Part shown: positions 7,985-48,349 of the stretch, one piece after another | Layout of the letters: every line of letters begins with the position of its first letter | How positions within the stretch are numbered: the first letter of the stretch is position 1 | From: Trichoplax adhaerens | Taxonomy: Eukaryota; Animalia; Placozoa | Assembly (NCBI RefSeq): GCF_000150275.1 | Contig: NW_002060956.1 | Span: 1,362,280 to 1,426,279 of the forward strand | DNA length: 64,000 nt | Direction of reading: 5' to 3' | Program-made: the position numbers and the translations under genes | The notes under the pieces: model-generated | Told to the model about the DNA's origin: nothing | The model's database searches: none | Seen by the model: only the letters and a program-made list of their open reading frames with translations

Positions 7985-8200
7985 AGTACAGTACCTACTG
8001 AATGATATGTACTGTACTGTACACTGTACACTGTACACTACAGTACTCAGTGTACAGTACTCAGTGTACAGTACTCAGTGTACAGTACTCAGTGTACAGT
8101 ACTCAGTGTACAGTACTCACTGTACTGTACAGTACTGTACACTATCAGAGAGTGGGTGGTCCAAGCCTGTACACTGTACAGTACAGTATACAGTAGCAGC
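7985..8200. repeat. 14-bp minisatellite (CAGTACTCAGTGTA)x5 within a TACAG/ACTGTAC-rich tract
   Basis: Five perfect copies at 8041-8110 plus a partial copy, flanked by actgtac/tacagta runs. Lies 5' of EXTL3. Confidence 0.9.
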
Positions 8201-16521: not shown

Positions 16522-19500
16522 ATGCATCTACTTTGGAATTTACTAGTTCTATTCTTACTAACTGTGACGCCTCTCCATCTTGATGCTACTGAACCTTCTG
16601 TTCCTAATACCGGTACGTTATATCAACTTCTTCTGTATATATTACATTTTCTGAATATCAGACTAAAAATCGATCTATAATGAGCGTAACCATCATTAGC
16701 TTAGAAAATATAAACTTATAAATTATACAAAATAGGGTCTATTTCAAGTATCTCCACAGATTCCAATCGACAATACAACATTACCAATATTGGTCGAGAT
16801 TTTTACCTTGGATATTTGGAATCAATAAGCAGCAATTCTAAACCTATGCTGACTATTTCCGCTCTACACGAAACCGCTGAAGTGATACTGACCAATTATA
16901 GGGAAAATTCCAAAACTACTTTCCAAGTCAAGTCCAACAATACCATTGAGCTCGTTCTTAGCAAGAATATTGAAAATACAGTTAAGGGTTTAACTAATAA
17001 AACCATTCGTATTCAGTCAGATCGTGATATTGTCGTTACCGGAGTAAATTCGATGCCAGTATCAGCTGATAACTACCTTGCTTTACCTGTGGAAAGCTAT
17101 GGCAATGAATACATTGTAGTTACTTATACTCCAAGGAGGTTGGCAGAATTTCTTATTATAGCTCAAAATAACCAATCCGTAGTCAACATCAGCTTTCCAA
17201 GCAATATTGAATACCAAGGACAACATTACTCAAGATCAAAGTTACTAATTATTAATTTACAACAGTCGGAAGGATTTTATTTCTCTTCATCGACCGATTT
17301 GACTGGTACAATTATTACGTCCTCTTCCGGCATTGCACTTTTTAGTGGTAATGAGTGTGCTTTTGTAACGACTGGTTTAAAATATTGTGATCACCTTGTC
17401 GAACAAATTCCACCAATTCAATATCTTGGTTATAATTATGTCCTGAATACATTTATTAATCGCAAAGCAGGCGATCGGTTTCGAGTTATTGCACCATATG
17501 ATAATACGGATGTTTTTATACAATACAATACACTCTACTATCCTCTATCTAGAGGTTCCTTTGTCGAATTTGAAGTACCTAGTGGTAATGCCACACTTTT
17601 AACTTGTAGTCAGCCTTGCTTAGTCGTACAGTTTAATAAAGGATACGATGCAGATAAAGTTAGTACCGATCCATTTATGGTTATCGTTCCGGATGTTGGA
17701 CAATCTCTATCACAGTATCGCTTTTACTCAACACTTCATAGCCAAGTCAGTATTCGTCACCATTATATAAATCTTGTAATCGAAACAGAGCATCGCCATG
17801 GACTATTATTAGATGGAAAATTGCTCTCTAAAATCAACTGGAAGAACGTCTCCATCTACTCTGTTAGTAGTATTAACATCAGCGCAGGATCTCATTATTT
17901 GAATCACTCCCTATCTGGTGTTGATTATTTATTAACTATTTATGGCTATAATTTATATGGTAGCTATGGCATTCCAGCTGGGATAAGGTTAAGCCCCCTA
18001 CCAGATGGTAAGTTTCCGATTGAGATCAATCCAGACGTACAATAATGTGTTTAATTTTAGATATTTTAGGCCATTTTCAAACTGTATCATCGCCTATAAC
18101 AGTACATACTTTTAATCAAAAAATTTAGATCAATATTTATAATGCATAGGTAAGATTTTAGCATGTCCTAACGATTATAATACAAAGAATAACGAGGACC
18201 TATAGTACTTAAACTCCTTACTTCTACAAAAATCGGCTATGGCTATATAGTGATTTCCGATTGAGACCAATGCAATAGTAAATAAATGTGTTTAGGTTTA
18301 GATATTTAGGTTATTATCAAATTGTGTCATCGCCTATAATGGCACATACTTTTAATTAAAACTTTAGATCCATATTTATAGTGTATAGGCAAGGTACTAG
18401 CATGTTTTAACTATTATAACATGAGAATAATCGAAATCTATCATGCTTAAACTCCCTACTACTACAGAAATCGATTATGGTTATGTAGTGAAATATAATT
18501 AATTGAATTAACTATGATAGATTTCTGATTGGGATCGAGAGACAGTAAAATTTATTTTTTTAATTTCAGATATTGTTAAGCTATTTTAAGCTGCGTCATT
18601 GCGTATAGTAATACATATATTTAATTAAGAGCTTTATTTTTAATGTATATGAACATATATACAGGGCACTTGCATGTTGTAACTGCTATAATATAAGAAT
18701 AATCAGAATCTATAGTGCTTAATTTTTTACCGATATAAAAATCAATTATAGCTGCGGTAATGTAATACAATTAATTATTTATTTGACTATAATACCGTCA
18801 AGTTGCATAGCGTATCACTATAATTAATATAATAAATGCTTAGTTGCCTTATGTAATGTGCGATTACTTTGATATTCTCCTTACATACTTTGATATTTTG
18901 TCACAAATTCTTATTTTGACGACAACTAGGCTTGAAAATAGTATTAAATCCATCATCCCGTGAAGTCGTCCTTGGCCAAAATATTACTTTAAGCTGTATC
19001 GCTTTTGGTTATCCTGCTCCTGTTACGGTATCTTGGTTCAAAAACGATCTTGCTATCACCACCGATTTAAGTCGACAAGCCAATAGTAGTGGCGGCTACG
19101 GTCGACTATTTATTACTAATACTTCTCTTCAAGATGCTGGCTATTATTCTTGCCGATTTTCCAACTCTTTTGGCGTTAAATATAGCCAAGCTGCTAAGAT
19201 AGCTTTCACTCGTAAGAGCTGATTAAATATTATAAATCTTATCAATTATTTGCTTAAAGTTGTGCCATAGAGTTCTATAGCGCAAAATATAAGAACATGC
19301 TTTTGATTTCCTTTTATTTAGAATCGGTTTTTGTGCAAAGTCCAATAAGTCAATATGTTTCAAAAGGCCAAACAGTCCTATTACAGTGCAAAATTATAAG
19401 TTCCGAATCCACCCCTGAAATAAGTTGGTACAAAAATGATCAAGAAATTCTTCGTGTCTTAAATGATTCTGGTTTGGCAGTGTTGAAATTAGTCAACGTT

Positions 19501-22500: not shown

Positions 22501-25500
22501 GATTTTGCACTGTAACGGCACCGGGAATCCACTCCCAAATATTACGTGGATAAAGGATGGAATGCCTTTAAAGAATTGGACTTTTCAGTATTCTTTAATA
22601 AATAAACAGCAAACGCTCATTATTCGAAATTTTACTTGGAATAACAGAGGTTCTTACCAATGTTTACTTAAAAATCTCGTTGGACAAATTGCAAGCCCGA
22701 TTGCTATCGTAGATTTTTATGGTAAGTTATCTGGTAATTTATCCAAGCTAACCGTTTTAATGAAGTTGTCTAATTTGAAAGAACCTTTCTAATACAGTTA
22801 GTTACAGGAATGCGTAAGGGTATGCTATGCTACTCATCTACATGTATGCTACAATTTTCGATTAATGTCGTCAGCTTATTGCTAACTATCTAATCGTACG
22901 ATTTTACTTACTACTAAGCATAAAATCCATCAATGTGTTAATGACTATAGATTATTATTGCTTGCTTGTAGCTAATGAATGAATTTTGTTTTTACCGAAT
23001 GCTAACTATGTATACTATACGCTTCCAGCTATACCTACATTTGTTAACTACACAAAATCGCTATCCATTCCAATCGGAGAAGCAATCACATTACAATGCA
23101 CTGGAGCTGGTTCACCTTCCCCTAAAATTGTTTGGCTACAAAATGATATTCAAATATCAACTAATCAGTCTTTTATGACTTTGCTATCTAATTTGAATGG
23201 ATACTTTGTAGTATCTAGTACCTTCAGTATTGAATTATCAACAGCACAAGATTCCGGTGTCTACAGATGTACGATTATGAATTCATTTGGGTTTTCTACT
23301 TCTACAGGAATATCTATTACTATATTAGGTAAATAATTGATAACCTGAAACACTGTAAAATTTTAATTATATTTACAATATAGTAGGTAATTATCACTGT
23401 TAAATATATGTTCTGTGCTGTGATAAGCTGCGTTACCAATAGTTATCATACATGTTCTTACTTTGAAGGATTGCCTCGAAAAGGATAGGTGTTGCAAATA
23501 GCATCTTCTAAAGTCATTAATGTGATATTTCTATTTTAGAACCCCCTTCACCTGTTGGCAATATATCCATAACAAATATAACCGCAAGAAGTTTCCAAAT
23601 TTCATGGCTGCGGCCTAATTTCGAAGGCCATACGCCAATTACCAATTATACTGTTGAAATTCTAAACCAGTTTAATAAGTCAATTCCTATAGCTCTCTTC
23701 TGTCCAACTAATTCAAGTTTTAACGATTGCATAATTCTCTCTACATCTATATCTATTAATAATTTGACCCCATACGCGTTATATTATGTTAAAGTTATTG
23801 CAAATAATATTGTGGGTGCAAGTCGTTCTAATTTAGCACGGATCAAAACTGATCAAACTGGTAAGACGATTAAATGCGAGCTGTATAATAGTATGAAATT
23901 TTAAATATTATTAAAGAAATCGTAGAAAGAATCTAAAAGTTGAATTAGTATCACTTTAAGATTATCGATGATCTAATGATTAATTGAAATTTATTTCTAT
24001 TGCCAAAGCTCCCGGGGACTCTGTTTCTAATATCATTGGATTAGGATACAATTCAACAACTATTAAAATTGCTTGGAATCCACCAAGTCAATCTAACGGC
24101 ATTGTTGGATATCGATTGTATCAGTGGAATTCATATGACCTGGCTATGAATCAAACCAATATAACATCTGCTTTAGTCTATGCTGGAAATAACACAACGT
24201 ACTATGCAACTAAGCTAGCAAGAGATCAAGTCTATTATTATCAGATTATCTCTTACAACTTAAAATATCACATTGATGGTCCCAAAAGTCCAGTATTTAA
24301 TGGATCTACTCATGAAGACAGTGCGTATTTTGATTGTTATAATACCATTATCAGTTATAACTACTCTATATGTTGACCCGGCAATCGTTAGTATTTTGTA
24401 CTTGCTCTTTTCTATGTAAGAAGTTCGTTGTACTAATATGCCATATGCCAAATTGTAACTTTAGTCATGATTCAATTACTTATGGTAGTCATTAATTTGG
24501 CACTACAATTGTAGCGAACGATTTTTATACACAATTAGACAACATATCTGCTCTTCTTATTTAGTAAACTATATTCTTAATTGTATACCGAACTACTAAT
24601 ACGTTACTACTACATGTTAGTAAAATATTGAAGACTATAATTTTAACTGCCTTGTTAAGTTTCTCTAAAGGATAAATCTGTTGTGCCAATATACCAAATT
24701 ATATCTTTATTTCATATGGTTGCTGATTCCTTTAAATTGATTTAAGCTATTTCATTATTAAAATTATAGTACCATCCTCAGCTCCTATCCATATCTTTGC
24801 TATATCGTCATCGCCAACAACCCTTACTCTACAGTGGGAGCCACCACCTGTAAAGAATCGAAATGGAGTTATTTTAACCTATAGAATTATATATCGATCA
24901 TCCTTATTAAATACAACAGTATCTGTACAAGTGGATGGCTCTATATTATCAACATTATTGAGGAATTTGCGCCCATACACTGCCTATAACATCACTCTTG
25001 CAGCAGCCACGATAGTTGGTTATGGACCGGAAAGTCCTATAGTATCCGAATCCACGATGCAAGCAGGTAAAGTTGAATTTCTCCGTAGATAATCTTATGC
25101 TGTCTAATTTAACTGATGATAGAAAGAATATTATAGCTTCAATTGAGTAGCTACGTAAAGTATATAGTGCTTACTTTCTCCATAAACTAATAACCTATAG
25201 TAGCTATCGAAAGATAAACCATTTTCTGGTGTAATTGCTCTGATTCTAATTTATGGTAATAAAAAATGACATGAATCTCATTACAGTTATATTTACATAA
25301 TCGAGAAATTTAAACATTAATTTTTGGAGGTTTTTTCTTCTAATTGCTAGCTCCTATGCAAAGTCCAAGCATATTCAATATTTCCTTGATTAATAATAAT
25401 ACACTTAAAGTAGAGTGGCTGGTAAGTGATTGAGTTGACTTTTACTACTATTACGAACTATATCTAATGATATTATTCAAAAGTTATCAAGCTACTACAA

Positions 25501-28500
25501 TGATAAGATATCATTTTCTTAACACGGGTATTATATATTATTATTACGGAGAATCTAATTACAGTATAGGCTGTCAAAAAGCATTCCTAAATCGTTTAAT
25601 TAATGCTATTAATTTCTAATAGATTATATTTTAAACTATTGTAATGGTCGAGAGTATTAACGAAAGAGTTTTACCAATTCATCACAATTACCTAATATTA
25701 AGTAGTTTATCACGCACTTTGTGTTCTTAACTCGGTATCAGATAATAAAAAAGCTTCATCGATATTGAAAGATATTAATTTTAGGTACTTTGCTAAATTA
25801 ATAAAATTATCCTATATCAAATAATGACAGTTTAAAATGAAATTAAAATAAGCGTAGCTAATATTGCCTGAGATATATGTATGAATCAGAACATACGGGA
25901 TGGGATTAATTAAGTACGACGTAATAATCTATAATGATATGAGAAGCATGATGTACCTACCAGTATTTCTAAAATTTTGTTCTCTAACAGCTACTGCCAA
26001 CAGAAAGTATTCCTGGTATTTTGGAAGGATTTTACTTACTGTTAAATAATTCTAAATTTGGAATAATGGAGAATCGAACCGTCTATGTTAATCAAACCGT
26101 CGAACAAGCTGGAAGGAGGTACCTATTAGCAGCAAATTTAACCTACTATTCGCAGTATTGGATATCGCTACAAGCATTTTCAGCTGGTGGAGCGGGTCCA
26201 AGCAGTGTAAGATATTCCATTGATACGCCTGTTTCAGGTTAGTTAATTCATATTAATGCATTAATAATAAGTTAATAAGATCAAAACGATATGTTGCTAC
26301 ATTATAACATGAAGCTTTTCTGTATGGAAGCCAGTCTATACTATGAGTTTTCAGCTTCTTAGAAGATATAAACTGCTGTATAGAATGAAAGTTTTAAAAT
26401 TGATTTAGTTCCATCTAGCTCACCCCAGAATATCAATATAGTACCTGGACAGTTCTTGGCAACATCAGCTATAATTAGTTGGGCTCCTCCTGCTGTGAAA
26501 TATCAAAATGGAATTATTACTAAATATAAAATCAGTTACATGATTGATAATCCTCTAATAGTAGCAAAAAACCCAGCCGTTATAGTTATTAATGACAACG
26601 TGACACAATATATGCTTGAGAATTTGATTCCTGTACAGAATTACACTATTCAGGTTGCAGCATCTACAATAGTCGGATTTGGTCCTTATAGTATCCCCAT
26701 GATATATCAAACTAGGAAATCAGGTTGGTTCAATGTAATGCAACATTTCTATATTAATTGATGCTGTTTGGGTAATTGTAATTTACCAATAACGGACGCA
26801 AATCTAGATCAGGGTAGCTGTTTCTGCTAATAGCTGTATCTACTTCCATATCTTATTTCATCATATTTATTTCAGTGTCCCCAAGTATTACTCTAACACC
26901 AACAAATTGGACCGTAGATGCAGGAGCTAACATTTCTCTACAATGTAGCGCAGATGGTGATCCAATTCCAACTGTAACTTGGTTGAAAGATAATCGCACC
27001 TTGATTGGAAAAAGCTATGAAAAAATATCAGGGCTTTCAATTCATACTAAAATATCTATTTTGCGAGCAACGATTGCAGATGGTGGCAATTATCAATGTC
27101 AGTTTATAAATTATGGAGGAACTGCTGTTACAGATGCTGCTGTTGTTCACGTTTGGGGTACGTATTTTCGGAAATGTATATTGAACTTTGAGCTTGTCTT
27201 GCTATAGGCTATAGAATACCTACAACGGGTTATATTATTCGACAGTACAAATTGTTGAGGTTAGCTACCAACACACCTGATGTTTGTAACATTAAATCAC
27301 AAGTATATATGCTTCCTTCTTGATTGATCCATATTTCCCTACTAATGATAATAATCTTAGCATATTAATGATCAAAGCAGCTAAGCAAAGCAATACTTTG
27401 TTGTCAGTGTTCTAAGGCATTCTACAATTAGTTTTTATCATATAAAAATTATGATGCATGTCCTATATCAAAACTTCCAGTTTTGATATTTATTCCATCA
27501 TAAATCTAGACTTCAAAAGTTGATCTTATGACATATTTCAAATGTATATGTAAAGATAGCAAATATACACCTCGACAATAGTAATTAATACCATCGATGG
27601 GCCATTGAGCTACTATAATCTAAATTTGTTATACTTTATTCACAATGCGAAATTTTTTCTAATCTTGAATTTTTGTGCTTGCATATTTTTGACTTCAAAG
27701 AAGCTCCTATCGTGAGTTTGTTTGCAAGAAATCAAAATATAACACAAGGTGGCAGTTTACAATTAACATGTTATGGTTATGGATATCCACCTCCTGTCAC
27801 ATTATGGTTTAAAGATGGTAAACAATACAATCATCCAAGCCGAAATTGGATTAATGGCTCTGAAGTACAGAGCATGCTGATAATTCATAATATATCGAGT
27901 CTAGATGAAGGATACTACAAATGCCAGCTAAATAACCCAGCTGGAACAGCTACAAGCCAATCATCATTGATTACTATTTATAGTAAGTCTTCTTTAGTTT
28001 TCAAAAGTACCAATTTTAACCCTATTTTAATCCAACAATTATTTGAAAATAATTTCCCAAAACCATAAATTTTGAGCGAAAGCACTGTATAAGTTCTGAA
28101 TAAACGGCGATAGTTTAAAAAATATTTTGTAAAAAATTTTATTGCAGAATTTCAATCCTGTTCTATTTCATACGTTAGAAATAATATTATATATGTTTCC
28201 AATTTTTTTCGTACTTCGAAAGATAGTAAACGCAACTGCATATGATTAGACAAATTGATATACTGTTGTTTATAGAGAAGACTTCGTAAGCGTATAATAT
28301 GTGCTTTTAATTCTCTTATTGCTTGTTGCATTAATAATTTATAATGTAATTCAAATTCTATAGCCTATCCGTCTATAATAGTTTCTCCTGTAAGTCAAGT
28401 CGTTATTGAGGGCAATACTGTCACACTATCGTGTACTGGTAAAGGTAAACCTTTACCCGAAATATCCTGGCTGAAAAATGGATTACCTTTGATCCGTGTT

Positions 28501-34500: not shown

Positions 34501-37500
34501 AATACAAATCAAACGGAACAAGCAGTTGAAACTTTGGATAAGGCAGTTACAACTGAAAAGAAATTATATGGCGGCGATCTTATTATTGCAAAAAATGCGA
34601 TGAAAACGATCAATAACGTATCGACAACTGTAACAGTATCCTTATTGATTGTTAGTACTCATACAATATTTTTTTAACATAATATTCTATCATTTAGCTA
34701 TCAAATTGTGTTATTTACTGTTTAATTATACCTACTATTGAAGCGCATATTAGTAATCCCGATACTTCATAAGAATTTAACTTTAATGATAAACTCACGA
34801 CACGACAGCATACTAGAGCGGATAAAGAAATCATATATTTAGTATGCCTGTAGCCAATACTAGAAATCTATTGTAGTAAATTTACAATCTAATCGTTTCT
34901 TGATTAAATTCTGGTATTTGGATATGCTTGATAGATTACAATTAAGGCGTTTGTTTAGTTTACCTAAACTAAGGACCTCTTTTAATAGCATTACTGCTTA
35001 TTTCTGTATGTAAATATTAGATAAATGGGATAATTAAATGGACAGTTTAGCTATCAATATATACGAGAAATCTCTTAACTATAATATAACCTATTTAGTA
35101 TAGATATTGTATGCAACGATTCAGAGTGGATTTCTTTTAATATTTATTACTTATCGTAGCTCTCAAACATGTAGGCTTACATAAGGTATCCTAGGAGACC
35201 TTCAAGCCATTTTTTTGATAGCCGAGTAAAATTATGCTACTTGGCCTTGCAAATATGATCACTACTAACTATGTTGTATATTTCAACCAATACCCGCAGA
35301 AATTTGTCAATATTAGCAATAGCCTATTAAATCTTCAAAACAGAGATGAATGGAAAAATGTGCAAAAGGTAATCTTAATTATGTCTAGCTTATATCACAG
35401 TACACGTATTATCTTTTGATTAAAATTGAGGTATCACAGATGGACTATTAGTCTTTACATATAAACTATTAACCAATACTGTATCGTTATGTAATAGTCG
35501 AGTTCTGGAAGCTCATCAGTAATGCAAAGTTTAGAGGATTTTGCCGGTAAATTGGATCTCGAGCCAAATAGCAACAAGACAACTTCAATTACCACCGAAA
35601 ATATAGGTAAAATCAGATAGTACCAAACTTGGTTAAATATCTTGTGCAACAGGCACTATAGAATTGATGATGTTAATATAATTTCTGAGGCCAATTAGAT
35701 AGTATTTGTTTAAATATCTTATGCAGCAGGCGCTATAAAATCGATGATGTTAAAACATTTTCCATGGTCATTCATTAATTACCAACAAGCCTAGATATTA
35801 ACTATATCTTGCCATTATAAATAGATAGTACATCTAGACTATTCTACACTCAGTATTTACTCTTCAGCCTTACAGGATAACACTTTGCACGGTCTAGTAA
35901 ACTGTCGTGTTGTTTTAATCCACTAGAATGTACTCGTCTATAAGTTATAGTAACTATTCCTATTTATACACTAGTTCTACAGATTAATCAATTAGCCGGA
36001 AGCCAGACAAGCTCCGATTTCCAATTTCCTACCAACAATACCAACGATGTTGATATGGCATACGACAATATTGCGGTCAGGATGAACTTACCAAAGCAAA
36101 TAATTCAGGATAATAAGGGTAATTACTCAGCTAAGAATTAAAATATGGTAAATTACATGCCGATTTTTAGTATTAAATTTAAAGTAGATTTAGCTATACA
36201 TTCTAGTCATGAGAATTGACTATTATATGGGCCTTTTATACCTTCATTTATTATAAACAAGATTAATGTAGGCTTCAGTTTAATGTGTATTTTGTAGTTT
36301 AATCTATTGAGTTTATTAAAATCATTATCATATGTTTCAAATCAGTTTCCTAAATCATACAGTTAATTATGCAAAATTACTATTGATTTATTATTTGTTT
36401 AATGTAGTTAACAAAGCCGTCAGTATCGTCTTTAACACGCTTGCAGAAATTTTACCCTCAGCGGGGCTAAATAGAAGGTGAGAATTTCAAATTATTCATA
36501 CTCAATCATCATGTTCAAATATATTTCATAGATCGTTGAGTCTGAAATGAGTTAAAATGATGACAGTCGATAGTGTTCAATTAGTAATATTCGAAACTTC
36601 GTTGGAGCAATTTCTTAGTCTTGTTGATAAAAATTAAGCTTATGATAACAACGCTATTTTGTTACAGCAACGATGGCAATGCTACAGCAGTAATCAATTC
36701 TAAGGTTTTCTCCATGTCGATATATCCCAAGTTGCAGAAAAGATTTGCTCGTTCATTCTTATTGCTCTTCAACAATAACCAACAAGTAAAGTATTCAGTT
36801 TTAATGGTATTGATTAATTAGTGTCTTCGATATCTAAAATTTATTATAAGTGCTTGGATAAATGCAGCATAGCTGTTCTTGCTACGTGATGATGATTTTA
36901 TTTATTTACTAGTTAAGATAAAATATTAAGTAACGGATGAAGAATCATAATTTAATTAGGAGTATTAACCGGTTTTGATTTGTTTTTTGGGATGTAAATA
37001 TCAAGCATTATATAATTCTGTTAATTCCGTTTTAAATTTGCAGGTTAATACATCTAGCAATAACTCCAGGATAAGAAATCTCTGTAGCTTTTGGGATTTT
37101 ACATCAGAGTAAATCTCTTTCTATCTAGATTATATGAAATTGCTATGCTTAGATGTTACCTATAACTGAAAATTTAAGTAAAGATTGGTACATGATTGTT
37201 TTAATTACTCTGTAAGATTATTAAAAGGCCTGAGTATTTCGTATTGCCAAGATAAAGCGTATCCGCACTGAATACTGCTATTTTTTGAATGTGCCTTGAT
37301 CTTTTATATGTAATTGAGACTTGACTTTTAGATCTCTACTAAAGTTACTGTATTATTAATTCATTAGTTCACAATTAGTTCAACATTTGTTTTTTAGTAA
37401 TACTGATAAATATCTACTTAATATAGCTGTTTCATCCCTTTATATGTAATTGAAGATTTGAGTATTTAGTGTATGAAGAATACAGTAATAGATCTTCACT

Positions 37501-40500
37501 AAAGTTACCATTTTATTAATTTATTAGTTTGCAACTAGTTCAATGTATATTTTTAGTAGTACTAATAAATGTCTACTTAATATAGCTCTTTTATTAGATG
37601 AAGTATTATCATTCTCTATGCTTAATCGAAGATTTAATTTTTGGGCATTATCGATGATTAATGAACTCTACTAGAAAAATAGGGATTTTTTTGTTTTAAT
37701 CTTTATTAATTAAAGAGTCGACCCTCTGTATAACCAACGAGAAGCTCTATTTAAATTAATATTTCATTAATTTAATTAAATGAATTAGAACTGGCGGATG
37801 GTCAGATTCAGGATGCAAAGTTGGTTCAGAATCCAATGCGTTACAAACTGCATGTTACTGTGATCATTTAACTACCTTTGCTACATTACTACGAAGAACC
37901 GAAGAAGAGGTAAGTAACACAATATCCGTAACATAATGAATCACACAGCATCTGAGATTAAGTATGCTATGAATTTATGTTATTTCCTGATGTTTATCCG
38001 CAGTATACTATAATTCGATGAAACTGCTGCTACTATCAAGTGCATTATTACGTATAATAATTCGAATTTGGAATTTAGACGTAGCATGAAAATATTGAAC
38101 GATAAACGCTTATCTTCAAATCATTGACATTAGCTAAATTAACTGTAGTTATAATTATAATTTAGATTCAATTGGACTCCATCAAATGGAAGCTATCAAT
38201 TCTTACTGAAATCTATAGTAGATTAGGATCAAATTAGATTACTACAGCTATTAAGTTGATTCTATTTCGTGTTTACCAGAGATAAACACTTACATAAGAA
38301 CATTGCTATTGCTCAATCAGTCATAATCTGTACGTGAATTATGCCAAATTAATATTTATTAAGTTGTAATAAACAATCCTTGGATCAAGAAATTCTACCA
38401 AAACTCGTGACGCTCGTATATGGCATAATTTAAAATTTCTTTCTCGAATACTTAGATAGCTCCAGGACACAGACTTGCGTTAGAAATAATTACTTTTGTT
38501 GGTTGCGGTTTATCGGCTCTTGGACTTTTAATCACCATTATTGTCTTTGCTGTTTTATGGAGGTAAGTCTTCATTAGGTACAGGTGCTGTACCTTAAATA
38601 CTAAATTAGACATACTACGTAATTATGTCAAGCAGAGAATTTATTAATATCAAAAAATGCAAGAGCAAAATTATTTTAGTTGGAGATACTCTTTTCTATC
38701 CTTCGGATTATTTCTTCATGGTATTATATTTATTATATTTTTTTTCACTCGATAGATTCCTTAATAATACCAAGAATGTCATTAGTATGAACCTTTTTGT
38801 ATGTCTACTTGTCGCGAATTTATTAATTCTCTTTGGTTTACCAAGAACAGAAATTAAGGTGCTAATTCGTATTATGTAATCATATTTCTAAAAATTAGAT
38901 TGTTTGATTGTGGTGGCAAGGTTAGTTTAATGCCAACAAAATAAGATTTAATCACCAAATATACTAACGTCTCTTGCAGCCATTGTGTGCAGTGATAGCT
39001 GCAGCTTTACACTACTCTTTATTAGCCTCGTTTTTTTGGATGTTACATGAAGGAATTTTCATGTATTTAATGTTGGTCAAAGTCTTTGATGTTAGTAATA
39101 AGGTGGCATGGTATTTTATAACCGCTTACCGTAAGTTGGAACCTTTTATTTATCCAGTATACTTTTTGGCTGTTTATACTTGTTAAGCAATCATTTTACA
39201 GATAAGATGGTGAATTAATATTATAACATGCTAGACCTAAAAATATTAATCTTCTCTTTCCTAATTTTAAACAATACCATTGTAAATGTTTTTACAAAAA
39301 CTAGTTATACCTGCCTTGATTGTTGGAATAACTGCTGGTGTGACGATAAGTAATCTTGGGCTCGACGGATACCTAAATGATTATGCGTAAATTTTGGATA
39401 ACTATTGAATCAAGTCGTAGAAATAATAACCGATAGAATTATAATATTTAATATACCTTTAATACGGCTCTCATGAATAAGATACTTACGTAAAGAAATT
39501 AATATTGATTGGATGCTTAAATTTTTAAAGGTGTTGGCTTGAAAACGAACCCCCAATCTTTTTGGCTTTTATTGTTCCAATGTTAATACTAGTCGTGGTA
39601 ATTTGCTATATAAGCTTATTAGATTAATGAATTAATCTGCCTTAAAGAACTTTTATTATCCATGAGACTTATATGTTTAATATTACTACGATTACTCAAA
39701 CAACTATTATATATAGATATAAAATCTTTTAAAATACTAATTAACCTATGATGAATTTTATAGGTCAATTGCGTCTTATTTGGTATCGCTCTCAAAGCAA
39801 TGCTGAATACGCAAAAGATAAATCAGCGCAAAGATGACGAGCAATTCCTAAAATTAAAGTAAGCATTCTATACTGATGAGTTGATTGCGGGAAAGACATA
39901 AATTAATTTACGTATAACCTAATTACTGGATGTCTATAGCGGTTGTATGCACAATTTGGTATCATGGTTTAGCGAATTTGATTCATAAGTTTAATTGCTT
40001 ATTATGCTAACAGGGCAGGCTTGCGAGCAGCAATAGTTTTATTGCCGTTATTAGGTGTTGGATGGATTTTGGGTGCAGTTATCATTGCTACTGATAACAT
40101 AGTCTTCCAGTATCTCTTTGCGATCGTAAATTCTTTGCAAGTAAAGTATTTGATATGCCAATATAAAATTTCCAGATCGAAGCCAAATAGTTAGTTACTC
40201 GCAAAACTGTGAAATTAGTATGGATAATAATAGATAATAGTTTCACTTTATATTGAAAAAATTAGAGATCTGATTATTACTTAGCTACATTAGCTATGAT
40301 GCGGGCTTAACAATCACCATTACAACCTCCTATTACGATTTTTAGCAAATAGGAATAAAGTCGTAAAAAGAGCTATAATACGTTACTTATTACTTATCAT
40401 TGCTACTGTTGTAATCAAGTGATAATGACAGAATATTAACTACATTATCCGATGCGATATTCTCTAATTTTGAAAATTAACTTCAATATGTAGGGATTCG

Positions 40501-43500
40501 TTATCTTAATATTCCAATGCCTCAAAAATCGCCAGGTTTGATATGATTGTCGCAATAAAATAGTGTTAGTATTGAGAATAGTTTAAAAGATGCGAAATTT
40601 GCCTTCATCAAGGTTTTGCAAGCCTATCGATCGATGATGAAAAAGAAGACAAGGCGCGAGTCAGCTTCATCATCTACGGGCCGCTCAAGAACCAAAAGAA
40701 TGTTGTCTAGGTAATTTGATGAATTGGATGGTTCATGATTTATGTTGATTTGCAGTACTATATCATCAACAGGTATTTGATCTATTTACTATCAATCTAA
40801 TATTTTAGTTGGACTACCGGTAGTCGATCGACAATTTCGACTGGGCTATCTTCGGAAGATAATTCTGCTGCTTCGAAATTAAGATGGAAGATAAGTATTG
40901 GCGAAGTTCTGGCAGGCAACAAAGCAAATGTAATAATTTTGAGATGTGTTTGGCAATTTAAATAATTGTGCAAAACTTGACATTGAGAGTACTACCGGTA
41001 CTCACTCATTATCTCAAACGTTTTATCACCTTTTAACTATATGATTTATTCGTTTGTGTTGCATAATTGCACCAGAGTATTTGCTAATACATTAGCAAAT
41101 CGTGAAGCTGGTATGACTAATGTTATATTAACCCAGAATTAAAGCTGGCACGATATAACCAATCGCTTATTGCTGATTTTCAATACCTAATTTATCGAAA
41201 TTTTCTGATTTTGCAGAAGGTTCGAGGCAGTAAACCTACTGAATTAGTACAAAAGAACGTCAGATTTATCGTTGAAGAAAAGGTAAATGTTTACTAAGTC
41301 AAGAATGTATAGAAGAGATTTATATCAGTTACAGAAAGAGCTGTATAATATTTTTCAGATTGACTGACTTGTCGCTAGTATTTCTATATAATTAGATATT
41401 TATTTTAGCTTGTTATAGCCATTATCAAGCTAGAATTGTTAGCGCTTTTAGCCTATATCGAACTAAAATGTATCTATTATATTTAAAGTTAGATACCTGT
41501 AGTTCAATTATAATACATTTTTTATATCACCTATTAGGAAATGCCAAGTACCATGATTAGCAATCAGAATGAAAGTACCAGTATCGTTGATCATGATCAG
41601 GTAAGCTAATAGCTCTAATAATATAATTATGGTCATTATAATACATTTTTTACATCACCTATTAGGAAATGCCAAGTACCGAGATTAGCAATCGGAATGA
41701 AAGTACCAGTATCGTTGATCATGAACAGGTAAGCTTATAGCTCTAATAATATAATTATGGTCATTTAACACCTTTAAGTAATATACTTAGTATCGGATAT
41801 GCAAAAATTGGATAAATTATAGTTGACTCATTTTGGTACACTATTTTATGATATGTAGTTATTGAATTCAAGCGTAAATCAAGATAGCGTTGAAGACTCT
41901 ATGCCACTCCAAAGTAATCTAGATCTTGATATGATTTATAAATTTATCTTATCGATTATATTCTGTATTATGACGACCAATTAACGTACATATACGCATA
42001 CATATAAGATTCATTGTCAAGTGATGAAGAAAAACATATTTCTACTATGGAATTGCATGCTACTCCCCATGACGTAAGTGTTGTAGAGTGTTTGGAAAAA
42101 TCTGCAATAATAATATTGCCCAAGTATACTATCGCTAAATATTTATACATTAATTTGACTTTATTTCTTAAATTATAGTCAGAATTGAATTCTGTCCACG
42201 AGATTGATTGTAATGAGTTACAAGGTAAATAATCACAACGTGTATGTTTTATTACGATACTAATTTAATTCTATTGTATAGAAAGCAATAATTCTAATGT
42301 ATGGAAAGCCATGATATTGATGGTTCTGATTTTGATTATAGATTTAATTTTACAAGATGAAAGAAACAATCAGCTAAATGTAAATTCTGATGAACATGAG
42401 GTAAGTTTGGATTGGTATAAAAATATCACAAAGCTACCTCCTTTAGTGGAGAATACTGCAAGTATTGCATTATTGCATGTATGAATTAGTGTAGCACCGA
42501 TACTGATACATGTGCTACAGAAGGTGTTAACGATCTATTACATATGCAAGCTTATAATTGAAATTATTCATACACTAAACGAATATATTTAAATTGAGAT
42601 GATTTGTAATGTAGAAAATTTCTTCTAATCAAGCATTCCATCACTGCATGTATGAATTAAAGTATTACTACTGATATAAGTACTGTAGAATGCGTTTACA
42701 ATTTATTACATATAGAAATGTGTAATTAGAATTACTCATACAGTAAATGAATACATTTATATTTAGATTATTTGTAGTGTAGAAAATTCCTTTTGATCTG
42801 AGTAGACATTAAATACGATATAAATTAGAAATAGACTTGGTACAGTAAGACTGACGTAGCATACATAAGTATGAAGAGTTATCGCTGAGTGGATATAAAA
42901 GTGAATTACATCTCTACTTGTAGATGTAATGCGTCATGTAGTAACACCATTTTCGATTCGAGCATGGTAAATCTAGATAGAGCTAAAAGTATTTAGCTCT
43001 AGAAATCAAAATTTTACTTCCATGGTCAATCGTACAGAAAGATCATTGAGTAAACGTGCTTTATTAAGGCTTGTAATTGATTATTACAATGATATATACT
43101 TTTTAAAATGTTGAACTTACCTATTTTAGGCGACGATCAAAAAGGATTATTCAATTTTGCTCGGAGAAGGTAGCTCTAATAAGTTTTTTATTAATTATAT
43201 CAATTACAAATTGAACCATTTTCAACTACCCCTGCGCTCTTCTATTTAAGCGTAAGCATACTAATTGTTGATCTACCATTGATCCTATTTTAGCGCCACC
43301 TTTAATTACATTCCAAGCATACTGGGCAACAATTTTTGCTAGAAAGAGTCATACAGTAATCTATTTATGTCCACCCGACTGTACAGCTATCGAATTATGG
43401 AAAGAAATGGAATTGCAGAAAAGTGGAGATTTAATGATTCAGCTAGTATCTGCCTTAAATCTAAACTGCTATTCGATATATGATGTTCGAATTTCGTTAG

Positions 43501-46392
43501 CTAATCAATCTGTAGTACACCAAGTCAAGATATTCCAGTCAGCTGGATGGTCAACTGCAGAAAATTACAATCTTGCCGATGTCCATTCTGCTTTTGAATT
43601 TCTTCGCCAATCGTGGTTGGACTATGCTTCTTATGCAGACTCGAAAAAGCCACTTTTAATTACTAGCAGGTTGATAAATTATTCATTTTCGATATACTTG
43701 TTACTCTTGGACCGTGTTGCTTTACCTACTAATTGTACTTGATCAATTGTACCAACGGTATAAAAACAAGACGAGCAATGATAGATTCCTATCTCCTTCT
43801 CTTTACTTATTAAAGCGCTGGAATTAATTCAACTGCTTCCTATATTGCCGCTTCTGCCGTATATTCCAGAATAGTATCCAAGCGTAATGTTAACGTCCAG
43901 AAAATCATCTCCCAGCTCTATAGACATGAAGTTTATGCTGATGTTCCATTGGTAAGATTAAGCATTAGCTCATTTATTTTTGAACTTGATTTGATTTGTT
44001 TTAACAATTTACTGTCCGTCCGCTTGGCTATAGGATCACATAAATAAGTGTTGGCTTTGTGTTTAATTAAAATTTGTGTAGGAATATTATAACTTTGCCA
44101 AGAAAGTTATCAACATAGCACTAGAATATAACGTTGACGATATTAGTGAAGAATGCTTATCCAAAATTATTGACCAGCGAACGGAAACAGATGCAGTTAC
44201 TGGCCGTAGCTTGGCTCATGAAGAACATTCGGTAGAGTAACTTTCATTCATGTGCTGCTAATGTAACATACGTGTATATATACGGTAGAAAATAAAAATA
44301 TTCAGATAACTTTAGATTGTTGGTATTACGATTATTTGACTGCTGTATACAGTAAAGTACTAATTTTCATCATTCGTTGCTTTACCGATGCTAGAAATTA
44401 AACTCTACGTTGGTTGATTTAGCAATTGATGAAGGTATTAATATGACAAGTTTAACTATTGTATCGATAGTGTATATCCTTACCCTAACAGGATTAAAAA
44501 ATAGTAGAGTTTCGTAATACGTAGGATGCTTTATGCGATTCATATCTTTCCCATTTTTGACACTTACTACAGCAAGTGCAACTGTTGCTAAAGACAATCA
44601 TGAAACCGGTCTTCAAATTGTTAAAGTTAGTATCGACCTATCCAATGGATATTAATTAATAAAGTTATTAATTTTAGAGCTAAACAGTCCAGTGTCATCG
44701 ATTCGTAATATTTGTGAAGGATCATTTTTTGGATAGTATAATAATGAGCAGCTAATATTATCTTGATGTAATTAACGCAATCTATATGGGCATGCTGGAC
44801 AAATGGAGTAATTAGATCAAAATTTTTTATCCAATACTATGTCTATTTATATTGCTAGGGCTACTTAAAGGGTGACAGATTCCTTCCGTATCATATGCAA
44901 CAAGATACAACGATTAAAGGAAAATTATGGGACTGGATGACAAAAAATAAATGTAGAATTGTTGTATCACTATGTCCATCTAGTGAACTCTCTCAGGTAT
45001 TTGATGATTTTTAAACAATGTTGCTGGTAATGTACAAATAAAAAAGTAACTTTTCGCCTATCTCAACTGTAAGTAAGATGACAGAAGCATACAGTAAAAG
45101 CCGTGCGAGTAGAATTCATATTGTCCATTTTTGATAAATTGATATTACCTGAATGCCCATGCATCTACTCCATGTGATGTATATGATAGAAATGGATTAA
45201 GTTGAGACTAGAGAAGCAGAGTCGATCTGTAGGCAGAATTTTTATGTTGGTCATTTTAAATGAATTTATATTACATGAATAGTATTAATCTACTCCATGT
45301 TATGTATATGATGGAAATGGATTAAGTTGAGACTAGAAAAACAGAATAGATCTATAAAAAAGGGATAGAAATATACATTAATGGAATAAAATTGTAGTTA
45401 TCTTATTCATTTCTAGTATTGTTTATTATTTATGTTGGAAAAAAGCGGAATCATCTGCCATTTGAAATCGACGATACCAATGCAACTATCACTGAAGTAT
45501 ATCATAACGAATACTATGTTGTATGGCAGTTGATGACATCGGTTTCATCGGTCAGTTTAGCTCTACTATAGACCCTAAATTTAATGGAGAAAATGTTGCG
45601 TTTATTCTTGCCTAAAATTACCTTATTTAATCGATTGTTTTTTTCTTTCCATGCAAGTAGGATATGAACAGTGGCTATACATTGCTCCATTATCACTACC
45701 TTGGTTGGAAATGTGATAGCTATCCATATAGCATTGTCGAATTTTTTAATTTCATGGTGGATATCAGAAAGAAAAATAGTTTATTGAATTCTGTTAGTAA
45801 AGAGAGTCCAATTGTAATTTGCAGTAGGTAATGAAATGCATTTGAGATGACAGGCTTTAGAGTTGGCTTATACATTAATTTATGGACTTTGATATTATTA
45901 AAATGCAATGATAAACGCGTGCAAAATATCATTATGAATTCTTTTATATTACCTACGTTTAGTAATGGAGCTGATGCAAGTGGCATTTATATTGCATTAA
46001 ATGATAGCATACAGCAGTTGGATGCGACCGGATATATTAATCTCTTCAGAACAGTTAAAAGGATGCAATGTTATCGGAAGAATATTTTAACTTCAGCGGT
46101 GAATTGAAATATTAATTTACTGTCTAATTTTTAAATTCTCTCATCAAGGATTTTGATAAGACTAGATTGAGTACTGAACTTGGTTCATTTCATTACTTTT
46201 AGACGCATTCAATTGATATTATTGTAGTTTATTTTATGGAATGAATTCATTTATTGATAAACAAGTTAATCGATTTATTTCTTTTCCCTGCTTTGTAATG
46301 GATTATTATAGAATGATTACATTTATTGCTACTTGGCTCTTCGATTGTACTACGAAATGCGACAGCAAGGTAAAATAATGCTTTATGTATAG
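16522..46392 (+). CDS. Giant adhesion GPCR (IgGFc-binding + 16 Ig + 10 FN3 + HRM + GAIN/GPS + 7TM) with a predicted C-terminal tandem pseudo-PTP (D1-D2); ~69 exons, ~4,300 aa
   Basis: Signal peptide exon 16522-16612 (MHLLWNLLVLFLLTVTPLHLDA). Phase-1 Ig and FN3 exons span 18930-33965, HRM 34055-34369, GAIN/GPS 34480-37909, 7TM 38456-40535, linker exons 40613-43024 and PTP-like exons 43130-46392. A manual GT-AG path stays in frame (about 13,000 nt). The aGPCR part is near certain; the join to the PTP part is inferred from splice phases. Confidence 0.8.
16736..18007 (+). other. Single 1272-bp exon encoding an IgGFc-binding (FCGBP N-terminal-like) domain
   Basis: Motifs GRDFYLGY, SADNYLALPVESYGNEY, DLTGTIITS, FSGNECA, CDHLVEQIPP..LG..Y, DPFMVIVP and SYGIPAG are typical of this family. 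Confidence 0.8.
18010..18760. repeat. Three diverged ~245-265 bp tandem copies filling intron 2 of the receptor gene
   Basis: tttccgattgagatc-like anchor at ~18013, ~18254 and ~18522, each followed by similar tcatcgcctata and tacatacttttaat blocks. Confidence 0.75.
18930..23328 (+). other. Ig I-set domains 1-10, one phase-1 exon each
   Basis: Exons 18930-19211, 19322-19588, 19868-20272, 20589-20867, 20977-21252 (not in the ORF track), 21324-21602, 21702-21980, 22074-22352, 22443-22721 and 23029-23328. Each has the I-set L.C...P.P.I.W and D.G.Y.C pattern with minor variation. Confidence 0.92.
23540..26723 (+). other. Fibronectin type III domains 1-5
   Basis: Exons 23540-23860, 24009-24320, 24770-25066, 25351-25421 + 25991-26237 and 26409-26723, with W.PP...NG.I..Y and L.PY..Y.I...A....G.GP.S motifs. 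Confidence 0.92.
26876..29915 (+). other. Ig I-set domains 11-15
   Basis: Exons 26876-27157, 27701-27982, 28364-28636, 29015-29275 and 29619-29915, all phase 1. Confidence 0.9.
30274..33965 (+). other. FN3 domains 6-10 and Ig domain 16
   Basis: FN3 exons 30274-30591, 31668-31970, 32102-32401, 32485-32555 + 32898-33144 and 33258-33569; Ig exon 33690-33965. Confidence 0.9.
30700..31400. repeat. Intronic ~90-bp degenerate tandem repeat
   Basis: gaaattgagt..atattgc anchor near 30709, 30798, 30887, 30976 and 31066, followed by two longer diverged copies (ctca.aaattgacgcaaaa at ~31130 and ~31288). Confidence 0.75.
34055..37909 (+). other. Hormone-receptor (HRM) domain followed by a GAIN domain with an intact GPS motif
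   Basis: HRM reads FCPAEVANNLRWPKTSGGQVATINCP...GLVTRLC...SIWQSIDTTGCIS. The GPS spans exons 37044-37108 and 37789-37909: CSFWDF..ETGGWSDSGCKV.......TACYCDHL/TTFATLL. Confidence 0.93.
38456..40535 (+). other. Adhesion/secretin-class (7tm_2) seven-transmembrane domain
   Basis: Exons 38456-38562 (LEIITFVGCGLSALGL), 38756-38858, 38980-39130 (LHYSLLASFFWMLHEG), 39305-39386, 39531-39597 (CWL....FWAFIVP), 39764-39858, 40014-40140 (LLPLLGVGW..G; QYLFAIVNSLQ) and 40494-40535 (GFVILIFQC). Confidence 0.95.
41500..41765 (+). repeat. 128-bp tandem duplication containing a complete 63-bp phase-0 exon
   Basis: Exons 41538-41600 (EMPSTMISNQNESTSIVDHDQ) and 41666-41728 (EMPSTEISNRNESTSIVDHEQ), with near-identical flanking intron sequence. 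Confidence 0.9.
43130..44231 (+). other. PTP-fold domain 1 (pseudophosphatase) and D1-D2 linker
   Basis: Exons 43130-43169, 43294-43669, 43816-43951 and 44082-44231 give GEAPPLITFQAYWATIF....TVIYL...QVKIFQSAGW...PLLITSSAGINSTASYIA...VNVQKIISQL...EYYNF. This is collinear with the PTP consensus TQGPL..T..DFW.MV....IVML...V.QF.Y..WPD...PIVVHCSAGVGRTG...VDV...EQY.F. Confidence 0.72.
44395..46392 (+). other. PTP-fold domain 2 (pseudophosphatase)
   Basis: Exons 44395-44434, 44573-44625, 44859-44996, ~45446-45550, 45661-45827, 45963-46098 and 46312-46392 give GYLKG...KLWDWM....RIVVSL...HYHYLGW....P...PIVICSSNGADASGIYIAL....QL...G.INLFRTVKRM...R...NDYIYCYLAL. Confidence 0.82.
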
Positions 46393-47910: not shown

Positions 47911-48349
47911 GCGTCTCGGCACTCGTCTACTGTACTTTATAAAGATATCTGCTAGGTAGCTGGAGCACTTATTTCATTCTCAGTAGACGTACGCGGTGGC
48001 AATATAGCAACTGCAATATTGTCTCATCGAACCAACAGATGGCGATGGATGATGAGATCTGCTATTTTATTAATTAATCGTCCTAGTCGATCCCTCGCTG
48101 GTGCTACTTTGCATGCTTGCACTTTTAAGTTTTAACTTTACTTTATTCCTATGAGCGCAACAGTTGACATCAAGCCATTCAACCTGTGCAATTTCGAGTC
48201 CATGGTATTAAATGCCATTAGGAAGAAATAAAATATCGCATGTGTATTTTAATGAGTGAATCTTTTTATACAATTATTTATCTATCGATTGGTATCGAAT
48301 TAAGGCAGGTATAATGGGTTGAAAAGGCAATCATTTTGAAAATTGATTT

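Follow-up and report, generated by a model that had tools for sequence, protein, structure and literature searches.

A locus in Trichoplax adhaerens very probably represents a single gene, encoding a very large adhesion GPCR whose C-terminal tail is a tandem D1-D2 pseudo-PTP module of the receptor-PTP type. The gene lies within a window of 64,000 nt, which is the whole stretch of DNA that was analysed (assembly GCF_000150275.1, NW_002060956.1, 1,362,280-1,426,279 of the forward strand), and all positions given below refer to this window. From the N- to the C-terminus, an IgGFc_binding head is followed by interspersed Ig and FN3 domains (16 and 10, respectively), then by HRM, GAIN, GPS, the 7tm_2 core, a linker, D1 and D2. 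The cytoplasmic tail comprises ~685 codons, in which a low-complexity linker of ~225 codons precedes the tandem D1-D2. A preliminary description, made from the sequence, had proposed that an adhesion GPCR tail continues in a single frame into a D1-D2 pseudo-PTP, and this chimera is now backed by spliced RNA contigs, frame checks, and matches to both Pfam and PDB.

Ectodomain and seven-transmembrane core

All of the features described here are on the + strand. The Pfam and PDB searches were run on individual exon pieces and the scores are therefore lower bounds. The proposed start codon falls in a hydrophobic, signal-peptide-like exon 1 (16522..16614), which was read from the sequence and is followed by a GT donor after 16614. 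Next comes the FCGBP-N-type IgGFc_binding head, a single open stretch of 443 codons (16714..18042; Pfam PF17517, 208.6 bits). Approximately ten Ig domains of the I-set/Ig_3 kind, roughly one per exon, then occupy 18920..23333, where Pfam matches cover 18920-19219, 19258-19620, 19849-20376, 20513-20881 and 22983-23333 and the rest were assigned by eye. They are followed by five FN3 domains (23521..26758), four pieces of which match Pfam fn3 while 25988-26239 is FN3-like by eye only. An internally duplicated module of five Ig and five FN3 domains begins with the Ig block at 26818 and is made up of a second set of Ig domains (26818..29926; Pfam matches and open stretches) and a second set of FN3 domains (30207..33595; Pfam fn3), with one intragenic FN3 pair, 33239-33595 and 26405-26725, being 51% identical. 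The last Ig domain (33683..33985; Pfam I-set, 65.5 bits) adjoins the first part of the HRM (34012..34167), which scores 27.0 bits with Pfam PF02793, above the cut-off of 26.2.

The GAIN region (34480..37933) has a weak Pfam match, of 16.7 bits on 35222-35416, and ends in a GPS (37784-37933; Pfam GPS 44.5 bits) with the cleavage-type motif C-Y-C-D-H-L/T-T-F-A-T-L-L, which follows the C-x-C-x-H-L/T-x-F-A pattern. The protein thus has the GAIN and GPS just before TM1 that define an adhesion GPCR; autoproteolysis, tethered-agonist activation and G-protein coupling, which also belong to that class, may apply to it. The 7TM core (38610..40535), also detected in a profile scan of the genome, is encoded by exons ~38610-38876, 38968-39183, 39286-39387, 39764-39858, 40014-40140 and 40494-40535. 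Three pieces match Pfam 7tm_2, the family of the adhesion GPCR core (38610-38876, 21.2 bits; 38968-39183, 43.5 bits; 39982-40191, 28.4 bits).

Splicing and reading frame from TM7 to the PTP-like exons

The connection between the receptor core and its tail is documented by GT..AG joints running from 40140 to 44571 in the RNA contigs of three runs, X4, X6 and X14, the last of which is recorded as RNA-Seq. RNA-backed junctions in the 7TM part are 39858|40014 and 40140|40494, the latter straddled by TM7, and the path then continues into the linker through 40535|40613, 40710|40809 and 40929|41217. Within the linker the junctions are 41600|41859 with 41600|41666 as an alternative, 41913|42009, 42073|42179 and 42224|42342; from the linker end through D1 and D2 they are 42400|43130, 43169|43294, 43669|43816, 43951|44082, 44231|44395 and 44434|44573. 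The last junction of the gene, 46098|46312, is deduced from its AG/GT borders, its phase and a PTP C-terminal motif. The joints singled out beforehand for checking (40929/41217, 42400/43130 and 43169/43294) are all present in RNA contigs, and the span 40929-43294, where a lack of junctions had been named as grounds for abandoning the fusion, is crossed by joints.

The sole contig that bridges TM7 to D1 is X14 record 3 (1,164 nt), which extends from the TM7 exon as far as 43919, with 29 nt on the TM7-exon side, fewer than the 31-nt anchor threshold; its TM7-side junction is also present in other contigs, with 40 nt. Overlapping parts of the path are found elsewhere. X6 record 15 (2,601 nt) contains exon 40014-40140 together with ~2.1 kb of upstream mRNA and extends past 41280, and X4 record 6 and X6 record 17 (~2.1 kb) pass from the linker through D1 into D2, beyond 45827. 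The breaks in the X4 and X6 contigs fall at duplicated or cassette exons. Run X5 holds unspliced pieces only, which were treated as DNA or pre-mRNA and counted neither way.

The cytoplasmic linker (40613..43169) is defined by RNA junctions, exon borders and an open frame. It consists of ten small exons (40613-40710, 40809-40929, 41217-41282, 41538-41600, 41666-41728, 41859-41913, 42009-42073, 42179-42224, 42342-42400 and 43130-43169), in the translation of which Ser, Thr, Asn and acidic residues are abundant. Exon 41666..41728 is a cassette and, by its translation, a near-duplicate of exon 41538-41600; it is both included and skipped in the RNA, where joints 41598>41664 and 41598>41857 are each found. 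The ten exons listed in the preliminary description all have AG/GT borders (10/10) and nine are exact by RNA, the mistaken one being ~42977-43024. This + strand exon was rejected, as it occurs in no contig and all three spliced runs pass from 42400 straight to 43130; the 43130 acceptor, which had been offered as an alternative, gives the exon that is actually used, 43130-43169.

In the coding frame the linker exons have no stop in 239 codons, compared with 13 and 26 stops in the other two frames, and at the intron stop rate the probability of such a stop-free frame is ~4e-10. An exon-by-exon phase check, in which split codons were translated by themselves, likewise gives one open frame from TM7 to the TAG ending at 46392, as originally read. 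Neither a signal peptide nor a single-pass helix is seen in the translated linker exons, in agreement with the first reading. The single-pass anchor that precedes D1 in receptor-type PTPs is therefore missing, with a 7tm_2 core upstream instead.

The tandem pseudo-PTP domains

D1 (43130..44231) is encoded by exons 43130-43169, 43294-43669, 43816-43951 and 44082-44231 and is supported by Pfam, PDB and RNA junctions. D2 (44395..46392) has seven exons, 44395-44434, 44573-44625, 44859-44996, 45446-45550, 45661-45827, 45963-46098 and 46312-46392, and ends in the stop TAG; its evidence consists of Pfam, PDB, exon borders and RNA pieces, the latter covering 44859-44994 and 45660-45827 along with a loose end that matches 45963. 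The Pfam Y_phosphatase family is matched in D1 at 43272-43739 (24.1 bits, profile 53-161) and 43814-44044 (12.2 bits, 177-213), and in D2 at 45661-45828 (21.6 bits, 132-177) and 45835-46104 (16.6 bits, 177-221), so that two of the four exon pieces exceed the cut-off of 20.9 bits. The scores are weak but consistent, since the four pieces are collinear with the profile twice over, which upholds the earlier view that there are two consecutive PTP-like domains. The two profile matches are 1.9 kb apart in the same frame, as expected of a tandem D1-D2 receptor-type PTP. Nearly all PDB hits of the D1 and D2 exons are classical PTPs (E-values 0.002-0.035), with PTPRJ, PTPRB and PTPRA matched by D1 and PTP1B and TCPTP by D2. 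In a six-frame genome scan with PF00102 the PTP exons of the window were not listed. As direct hmmscan of the exon pieces does match, this miss is not evidence against them, and shows instead how divergent they are.

What has become of the catalytic residues? In D1 the P-loop reads I-T-S-S-A-G-I-N-S-T-A, with Cys replaced by Ser and Arg by Ser, the WPD position reads W-S-T, and no KNRY-type N-terminal motif was seen in the translation. In D2 the P-loop is V-I-C-S-S-N-G-A-D-A-S-G, in which the Cys is kept without the Arg, and the WPD position is W-K-C-D. Both domains thus have homology to the classical PTP family while lacking the C-x5-R P-loop and the WPD general acid, and through this loss of residues both are predicted to be catalytically dead.

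Conservation in a relative

A phmmer search of the D1 piece against 1.84 billion representative proteins, a set that may leave out entries from the genome under study, found a single genuine relative, P0001 (a 165-aa ORF fragment from a related genome), and returned no full-length gene model; the other match, P0002, is a spurious repeat protein and was discarded. P0001 is encoded on contigs of 2.8 kb (L001) and 1.3 kb. The metagenome contig L001 comes from a diverged relative and carries nine collinear tail exons of 40-72% identity, its 2.8 kb confining the comparison to tail exons. For the tail, dN/dS against L001 is ~0.15 at a dS of 1.69, where synonymous sites are near saturation. The altered D1 motif is kept in the relative (G-V-N-S-T-A-S), as is the D2 Cys. 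The collinearity, identity and dN/dS of these exons indicate that the module, inactive as it is predicted to be, is under selection. A PTP fold deprived of its catalytic residues and held by purifying selection is what characterises a pseudophosphatase.

Origin of the tail

Two paralogous FN3 adhesion-GPCR loci are present in the genome, C1396 (~1313 kb) and C1397 (~466 kb). Both have a GPS and 7TM, neither has tail exons downstream of TM7, and a search found no paralogous tails elsewhere in the genome. The D1 exon is single-copy, which leaves no retrocopy in the genome. The closest relatives of the membrane-proximal FN3 are other FN3 loci, including the two FN3-aGPCR paralogues, not the LAR-like RPTP locus C1408:344.5-348.5 kb. 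In this RPTP locus the D1 exon is the best match of the D1 P-loop exon of the tail and the D2 exon that of D2 exon r, with E ~1e-3. The preliminary description had left two evolutionary routes side by side. Because the membrane-proximal FN3 lies nearer to these other FN3 loci than to the RPTP locus and the two paralogues are without a tail, comparison of the sequences favours an adhesion GPCR that may have captured an RPTP tail over an RPTP whose helix was replaced by HRM-GAIN-7TM.

Alternative explanations

Could the adhesion GPCR and a cytosolic tandem pseudo-PTP be separate products, with the fused mRNA a minor by-product of conjoined or read-through transcription? This would involve an isoform, produced by intron retention or early polyadenylation, with its stop at TAA 40963-40965, along with an internal promoter for a tail-only product, for which the 729-nt intron 42401-43129 has room for a start site. 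Low-depth unspliced contigs do lie inside introns 40141-40493 and 40930-41216 (X14 record 2, X4 record 5 and X6 record 16), and the RNA evidence, being short-read contigs and not single molecules, leaves molecule ends out of view. However, every spliced contig has the fused exon order and none has an alternative first exon, and a non-coding bridge has no need of 239 stop-free codons in the sole frame that connects TM7 to D1. With the PTP exons also preceded by no signal peptide or TM helix, separate products appear improbable.

A translated fusion might still carry a functionless tail, a neutral and decaying vestige of an RPTP gene that was either fused or adjacent. The disappearance of catalytic motifs from both domains, the passing of the Pfam cut-off by only two exon pieces and the single significant true match among 1.84 billion representative proteins, itself a fragment from a related genome, would all be compatible with decay. 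Yet nine collinear exons have stayed open in the relative at that dS with the dN/dS given above, and the altered D1 P-loop is itself conserved, making neutral decay distinctly unlikely. The least probable reading, to which we give hardly any weight, is that the tail is not a PTP fold and that the Pfam matches arose by chance. The low per-exon scores (12-24 bits) and the modest PDB E-values point that way, as do a pLDDT of 37 when the D1 core exon alone was modelled with AlphaFold2 (two-row alignment) and an ESM Atlas search without a usable match. Chance does not readily account for four exon pieces falling on the same family, collinear in each domain (53-161 then 177-213; 132-177 then 177-221), for PDB matches that are nearly all classical PTPs, or for an exon border at profile position 177, in the P-loop, that is common to many canonical PTP genes of the genome.

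Relation to known receptors

Adhesion GPCRs with Ig/HRM/GAIN ectodomains are known from the ADGRA/GPR124-125 and ADGRF5 types, and the tails of characterised aGPCRs are largely unstructured. The Trichoplax receptor resembles these proteins in its N-terminal adhesion modules, its HRM, its GAIN with an HL/T-type GPS and its 7tm_2 core, but differs in bearing two PTP-type domains on its tail. With the LAR/R2A RPTPs it shares an Ig/FN3 ectodomain, a tandem D1-D2 and a P-loop intron at profile position 177, whereas its anchor is HRM-GAIN-7TM rather than one helix, and its D1, the active domain in RPTPs, is without Cys and Arg. The pseudophosphatase receptors IA-2/PTPRN, PTPRN2 and PTPRU, like the inactive D2 of RPTPs, are thought to work by binding. 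As in those three receptors the classical-PTP fold is conserved and the catalytic residues are lost; they are single-pass, however, while here both tandem domains, apparently dead, sit beneath a 7TM receptor.

A further comparison is with the GPCR-bigrams, which include GPCR-PIPK, GPCR-TKL/K, GPCR-TK, GPCR-INPP, GPCR-AC and GPCR-PDE and occur in oomycetes, amoebozoans, choanoflagellates and sponges (PMC5784254, PMC6033456, PMC12716839), metazoan examples being described as rare or nonexistent (PMC5784254). The present receptor is similar in that a 7TM and a C-terminal signalling-enzyme fold belong to one polypeptide, as judged at the transcript level, with the enzyme-family domain in the same frame; its accessory module, unlike theirs, is predicted from motif loss to lack catalytic competence. 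Known bigrams are moreover of a non-adhesion class and have kinase, lipid-phosphatase or cyclic-nucleotide domains, none having a classical PTP. A literature search found no description of a GPCR-PTP or aGPCR-PTP fusion or of a 7tm_2 + Y_phosphatase architecture, in line with the initial statement that no characterised aGPCR-PTP was known.

Proposed role and significance

In the scheme proposed here, an RPTP cytoplasmic module would have been captured by an aGPCR with an FCGBP head and an Ig/FN3 ectodomain. Since catalytic residues are missing from each of the PTP-like domains, the tail would serve as a pseudophosphatase docking module and not as an enzyme, much like inactive RPTP D2 domains or the IA-2/PTPRN pseudophosphatases. 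Carried by the receptor's C-terminal fragment, it would bring in partners from the cytoplasm at sites of ectodomain engagement. The suggestion that it scaffolds a phosphotyrosine network is somewhat weakened, as both P-loops are without the phosphate-binding arginine. A bolder and decidedly tentative proposal is that the receptor represents a new type of GPCR-bigram, and the first in a metazoan, with a full RPTP cytoplasmic module on an aGPCR C-terminal fragment that placozoan lineages have kept because it works in signalling. On this view the module might, for instance, be a site at which RPTP-D2-type partners dock, or a redox or ligand sensor that relies on the surviving D2 cysteine.

The reach of the finding is limited in that the gene is single-copy and lineage-specific and its PTP domains are very divergent and apparently dead. 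The fusion would nonetheless be a counter-example to the statement that enzyme-family domains are absent from metazoan GPCR tails (PMC5784254). If the bolder proposal is true, a single molecule would couple GAIN activation by adhesion to scaffolding of the RPTP style, and RPTP intracellular modules would be able to work under a 7TM anchor. Among the main systems by which animal cells read cell contact are adhesion GPCRs and receptor PTPs, which are treated as separate classes. An expressed and conserved natural hybrid in an early-branching animal would mean that modules of both classes are exchangeable, and would offer a defined object for studying what inactive PTP domains do.

Splicing of a tandem PTP-like tail onto an adhesion GPCR

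The gene at 16522-46392 of the window (G000:C1401:1362280-1426279), all features of which lie on the + strand, encodes an adhesion GPCR (aGPCR) whose 7TM core is in all likelihood spliced to a linker and a tandem pseudophosphatase. Central to this reading are Logan contigs of four sequencing runs from four studies, which were aligned to 39900-45899; all of the RNA support is in the form of assembled contigs. Intron-less contigs with GT..AG joints occur in three of the four runs (X4, X6 and X14, the last recorded as RNA-Seq). With borders refined, the joints lead from the receptor end into the first linker exons (40140/40494, 40535/40613, 40710/40809 and 40929/41217), through an alternative pair (41600/41666 and 41600/41859) and the later linker (41913/42009, 42073/42179, 42224/42342, 42400/43130 and 43169/43294), and onwards from the first PTP-like domain, D1 (43130-44231), into the second, D2 (44395-46392), by way of 43669/43816, 43951/44082, 44231/44395 and 44434/44573. 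Nine of the ten tail exons of the preliminary description are exact by these joints, and the three junctions it had singled out for checking (40929/41217, 42400/43130 and 43169/43294) are all present. The tenth exon, 42977-43024, is unused in the contigs, 42400 being joined instead to 43130-43169, which had been named as its alternative.

For instance, one X14 contig (record 3, 1,164 nt) takes in the final 29 nt of the TM6/7 exon and reaches 43919, within D1, and one X6 contig (record 15, 2,601 nt) holds 40014-40140 and ~2.1 kb of upstream mRNA together with the linker past 41280, its loose end being 39829-39858 in the TM5/ICL3 exon. Two further contigs of ~2.1 kb each (X4 record 6 and X6 record 17) pass from the linker through D1 to D2 and extend beyond 45827 by ~640 and ~720 nt, respectively. 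The X4 and X6 contigs are interrupted at a near-identical tandem exon pair, 41538-41600 and 41666-41728, each of 63 nt (21 codons) and differing at 4 residues. The second copy is included in some contigs and skipped in others, so that the duplication provides an optional repeat in the linker of the receptor tail. As the genome searched (105.6 Mb, 1,414 contigs, G+C ~32%) has a single copy of the D1 exon, the spliced contigs do not derive from a retrocopy.

Phase was followed exon by exon, with split codons translated separately and not from a built joined sequence. Followed in this way, the frame stays open between TM7 and the TAG (last base 46392) and reaches D1 and D2 in the same frames as those matching Pfam, which bears out the earlier proposal of a continuous frame. 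Within the linker exons and exon 40494-40535, which ends TM7, the coding frame has no stop in 239 codons, versus 13 and 26 stops in the two alternatives. The introns in between have 0.087 stops per codon, and at that rate a stop-free linker would arise with a probability of ~4e-10. The remaining D2 exons (44573-44625, 44859-44996, 45446-45550, 45661-45827 and 45963-46098) were placed by contig bookkeeping, AG/GT borders and phase, and the last junction, 46098/46312, is a predicted one. The predicted C-terminus, in exon 46312-46392, ends in L-Y-V, and such hydrophobic-x-hydrophobic endings are of the type bound by class II PDZ domains.

Domain order of the receptor

The order of the receptor domains was read from + strand stop-free stretches together with Pfam scans. 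A hydrophobic start at 16522 is followed by an IgGFc_binding domain (16714-18042, 208.6 bits). Next come alternating runs of Ig exons (about ten at 18920-23333, five at 26818-29926 and one at 33683-33985) and FN3 exons (five at 23521-26758 and five at 30207-33595). After these lie an HRM (34012-34167, 27.0 bits), a region with a weak GAIN match and a clear GPS (37784-37933, 44.5 bits), whose motif, C-Y-C-D-H-L/T-T-F-A-T-L-L, is of the cleavage type. Pieces of 7tm_2 lie at 38610-38876, 38968-39183 and 39982-40191; on translation, the junction 40140/40494 falls within TM7, which ends at 40535 with F-Q-C-L-K-N-R-Q. Within the ectodomain (18920-33595) a block of an Ig run and five FN3 domains looks to be present twice, the second copy being an apparent internal duplication; corresponding FN3 exons clearly pair between the blocks, with 51% identity between 33239-33595 and 26405-26725.

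Catalytic state and conservation of the tail domains

The curated Pfam cut-off for Y_phosphatase is 20.9 bits, and the searches were made per exon, so that the scores are lower bounds. D1 matches at 43272-43739 (24.1 bits, profile 53-161) and 43814-44044 (12.2 bits, profile 177-213), and D2 at 45661-45828 (21.6 bits, profile 132-177) and 45835-46104 (16.6 bits, profile 177-221). These four pieces are collinear, and the PDB sequence matches are almost exclusively to classical PTPs (PTPRJ, PTPRB, PTPRA and PTPRS for D1; PTP1B and TCPTP for D2), in keeping with the two PTP-fold domains first described. At profile position 177, directly 5' of A-G-x-G-R-T-G, lies an exon border shared with many canonical PTP genes of the genome. 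Among local canonical loci, the best matches of the D1 P-loop exon and of a D2 exon (r) are, weakly (E ~1e-3), the D1 and D2 exons of a LAR-like RPTP locus (C1408:344.5-348.5 kb) with an FN3 array upstream. Judged by sequence, D1 and D2 are very divergent from PTPs: a six-frame genome scan for the PTP profile did not pick up the tail PTP exons, 1.84 billion representative proteins gave as significant matches one ORF fragment and one spurious repeat protein, and structure prediction of the D1 exon alone reached pLDDT 37.

Both domains should be catalytically inactive, since classical PTP chemistry needs the Cys nucleophile, the P-loop Arg and the WPD Asp. In the P-loop of D1 (I-T-S-S-A-G-I-N-S-T-A) Ser stands in place of both Cys and Arg; the WPD position of this domain is W-S-T, and no KNRY-type N-terminal motif was seen in its translated exons. 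D2 keeps the Cys (V-I-C-S-S-N-G-A-D-A-S-G) without the Arg, and has W-K-C-D at the WPD position. The pseudo-PTP status originally assigned thus holds for each, P-loop Arg and WPD motif being missing from both.

What, then, argues that such a tail is maintained? The single true protein match, P0001 (165 aa), belongs to a diverged relative and sits on the short metagenome contigs L001 and L002. The former (2,762 nt) carries nine collinear exons, counterparts of those from 43130-43169 to 45661-45827, with 40-72% of amino acids identical. The P-loop of D1 is retained there in its altered form (G-V-N-S-T-A-S), as is the cysteine of D2 (I-L-I-C-S). A comparison of four exon pairs gave a dN/dS of 0.15 at a dS of 1.69. 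By collinearity, motif retention and this ratio, the tandem pseudo-PTP module is maintained by purifying selection in both of these diverged lineages. L001 is a short contig of tail exons, and the result concerns the module and not its attachment to a 7TM in the relative. Against that ratio, a PTP-like tail persisting as a neutral relic is very improbable, and a tail lacking the PTP fold is harder still to credit given the collinear double Y_phosphatase match. Unlikely, too, are conjoined transcripts from which the aGPCR and PTP parts yield separate functional products. These would accommodate an internal start, and low-depth unspliced contigs in two tail introns, 40141-40493 and 40930-41216 (X14 record 2, X4 record 5 and X6 record 16), allow a short isoform. 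Such contigs could represent intron retention or pre-mRNA; retention of 40930-41216 would end the protein at TAA 40963-40965 as a short-tailed receptor.

Origin and precedents

Did an aGPCR gain an RPTP tail, or did an RPTP exchange its helix for a 7TM? Both had been proposed. The membrane-proximal FN3 is most similar to its own internal copy and, next to that, to FN3 exons at C1402, C1397, C1412 and C1396; it scores lower against the LAR-like RPTP locus. At C1397 and C1396 GPS and 7tm_2 exons adjoin FN3 arrays, and a search for the 19 tail exons in ~13 kb 3' of TM7 at both gave no convincing match, the one weak hit (exon 41217-41282, 16 residues, E 0.007) looking like chance. These FN3 affinities and tailless paralogues favour an FCGBP-head Ig/FN3 aGPCR that would have gained an RPTP cytoplasmic module, and disfavour the helix exchange. 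At both paralogous loci (L004, G000:C1396:1309000-1318999; L005, G000:C1397:462000-471000) the GPS reads C-Y-C-N-H-T-T-T-F, with Thr replacing Leu before the cleavage site.

GPCR-enzyme fusions are known from oomycetes, amoebozoans, choanoflagellates and sponges and comprise GPCR-PIPK, -TKL/K, -TK, -INPP, -AC and -PDE (PMC12716839, PMC5784254); according to PMC5784254, the extensions of metazoan GPCRs lack catalytic domains. In the papers covered by full-text searches there was no report of an aGPCR-PTP or a 7tm_2 plus Y_phosphatase architecture, which is undescribed in that sense.

Neighbouring features

Upstream, at 5089-7179 on the - strand, lies a 696-codon ORF for a putative exostosin-type glycosyltransferase, recognised by eye. 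The next gene downstream (49546-59597, +) resembles a Rab-type small GTPase, with the P-loop G-D-S-G-V-G-K-T in its first exon at 49546 and a last exon, 59142-59597, ending C-K-A-C; it begins in the window's only G+C-rich stretch (46%, peak 48001-50000). Short ORFs at 1461-1703, 8007-8282 and 48336-48833 share the peptide C-T-V-Q-Y-S/T-V, on either strand, which suggests a dispersed, G+C-richer repeat element.

Proposed role of the tail

The functional role of the tail is put forward with less confidence than the architecture: the splicing, the open frame, the PTP homology, the loss of catalytic motifs and the selection are results, and the tail's binding and partners, and coupling of the receptor to G proteins, are what we infer. 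Classical phosphotyrosine binding by D1 or D2 is doubtful, as the P-loop Arg is missing from both. GAIN cleavage would leave a C-terminal fragment bearing a long flexible linker and the tandem pseudophosphatase, which may act as a docking module through which protein-protein interactions of the RPTP-D2 kind would reach the places of Ig/FN3 ectodomain engagement.
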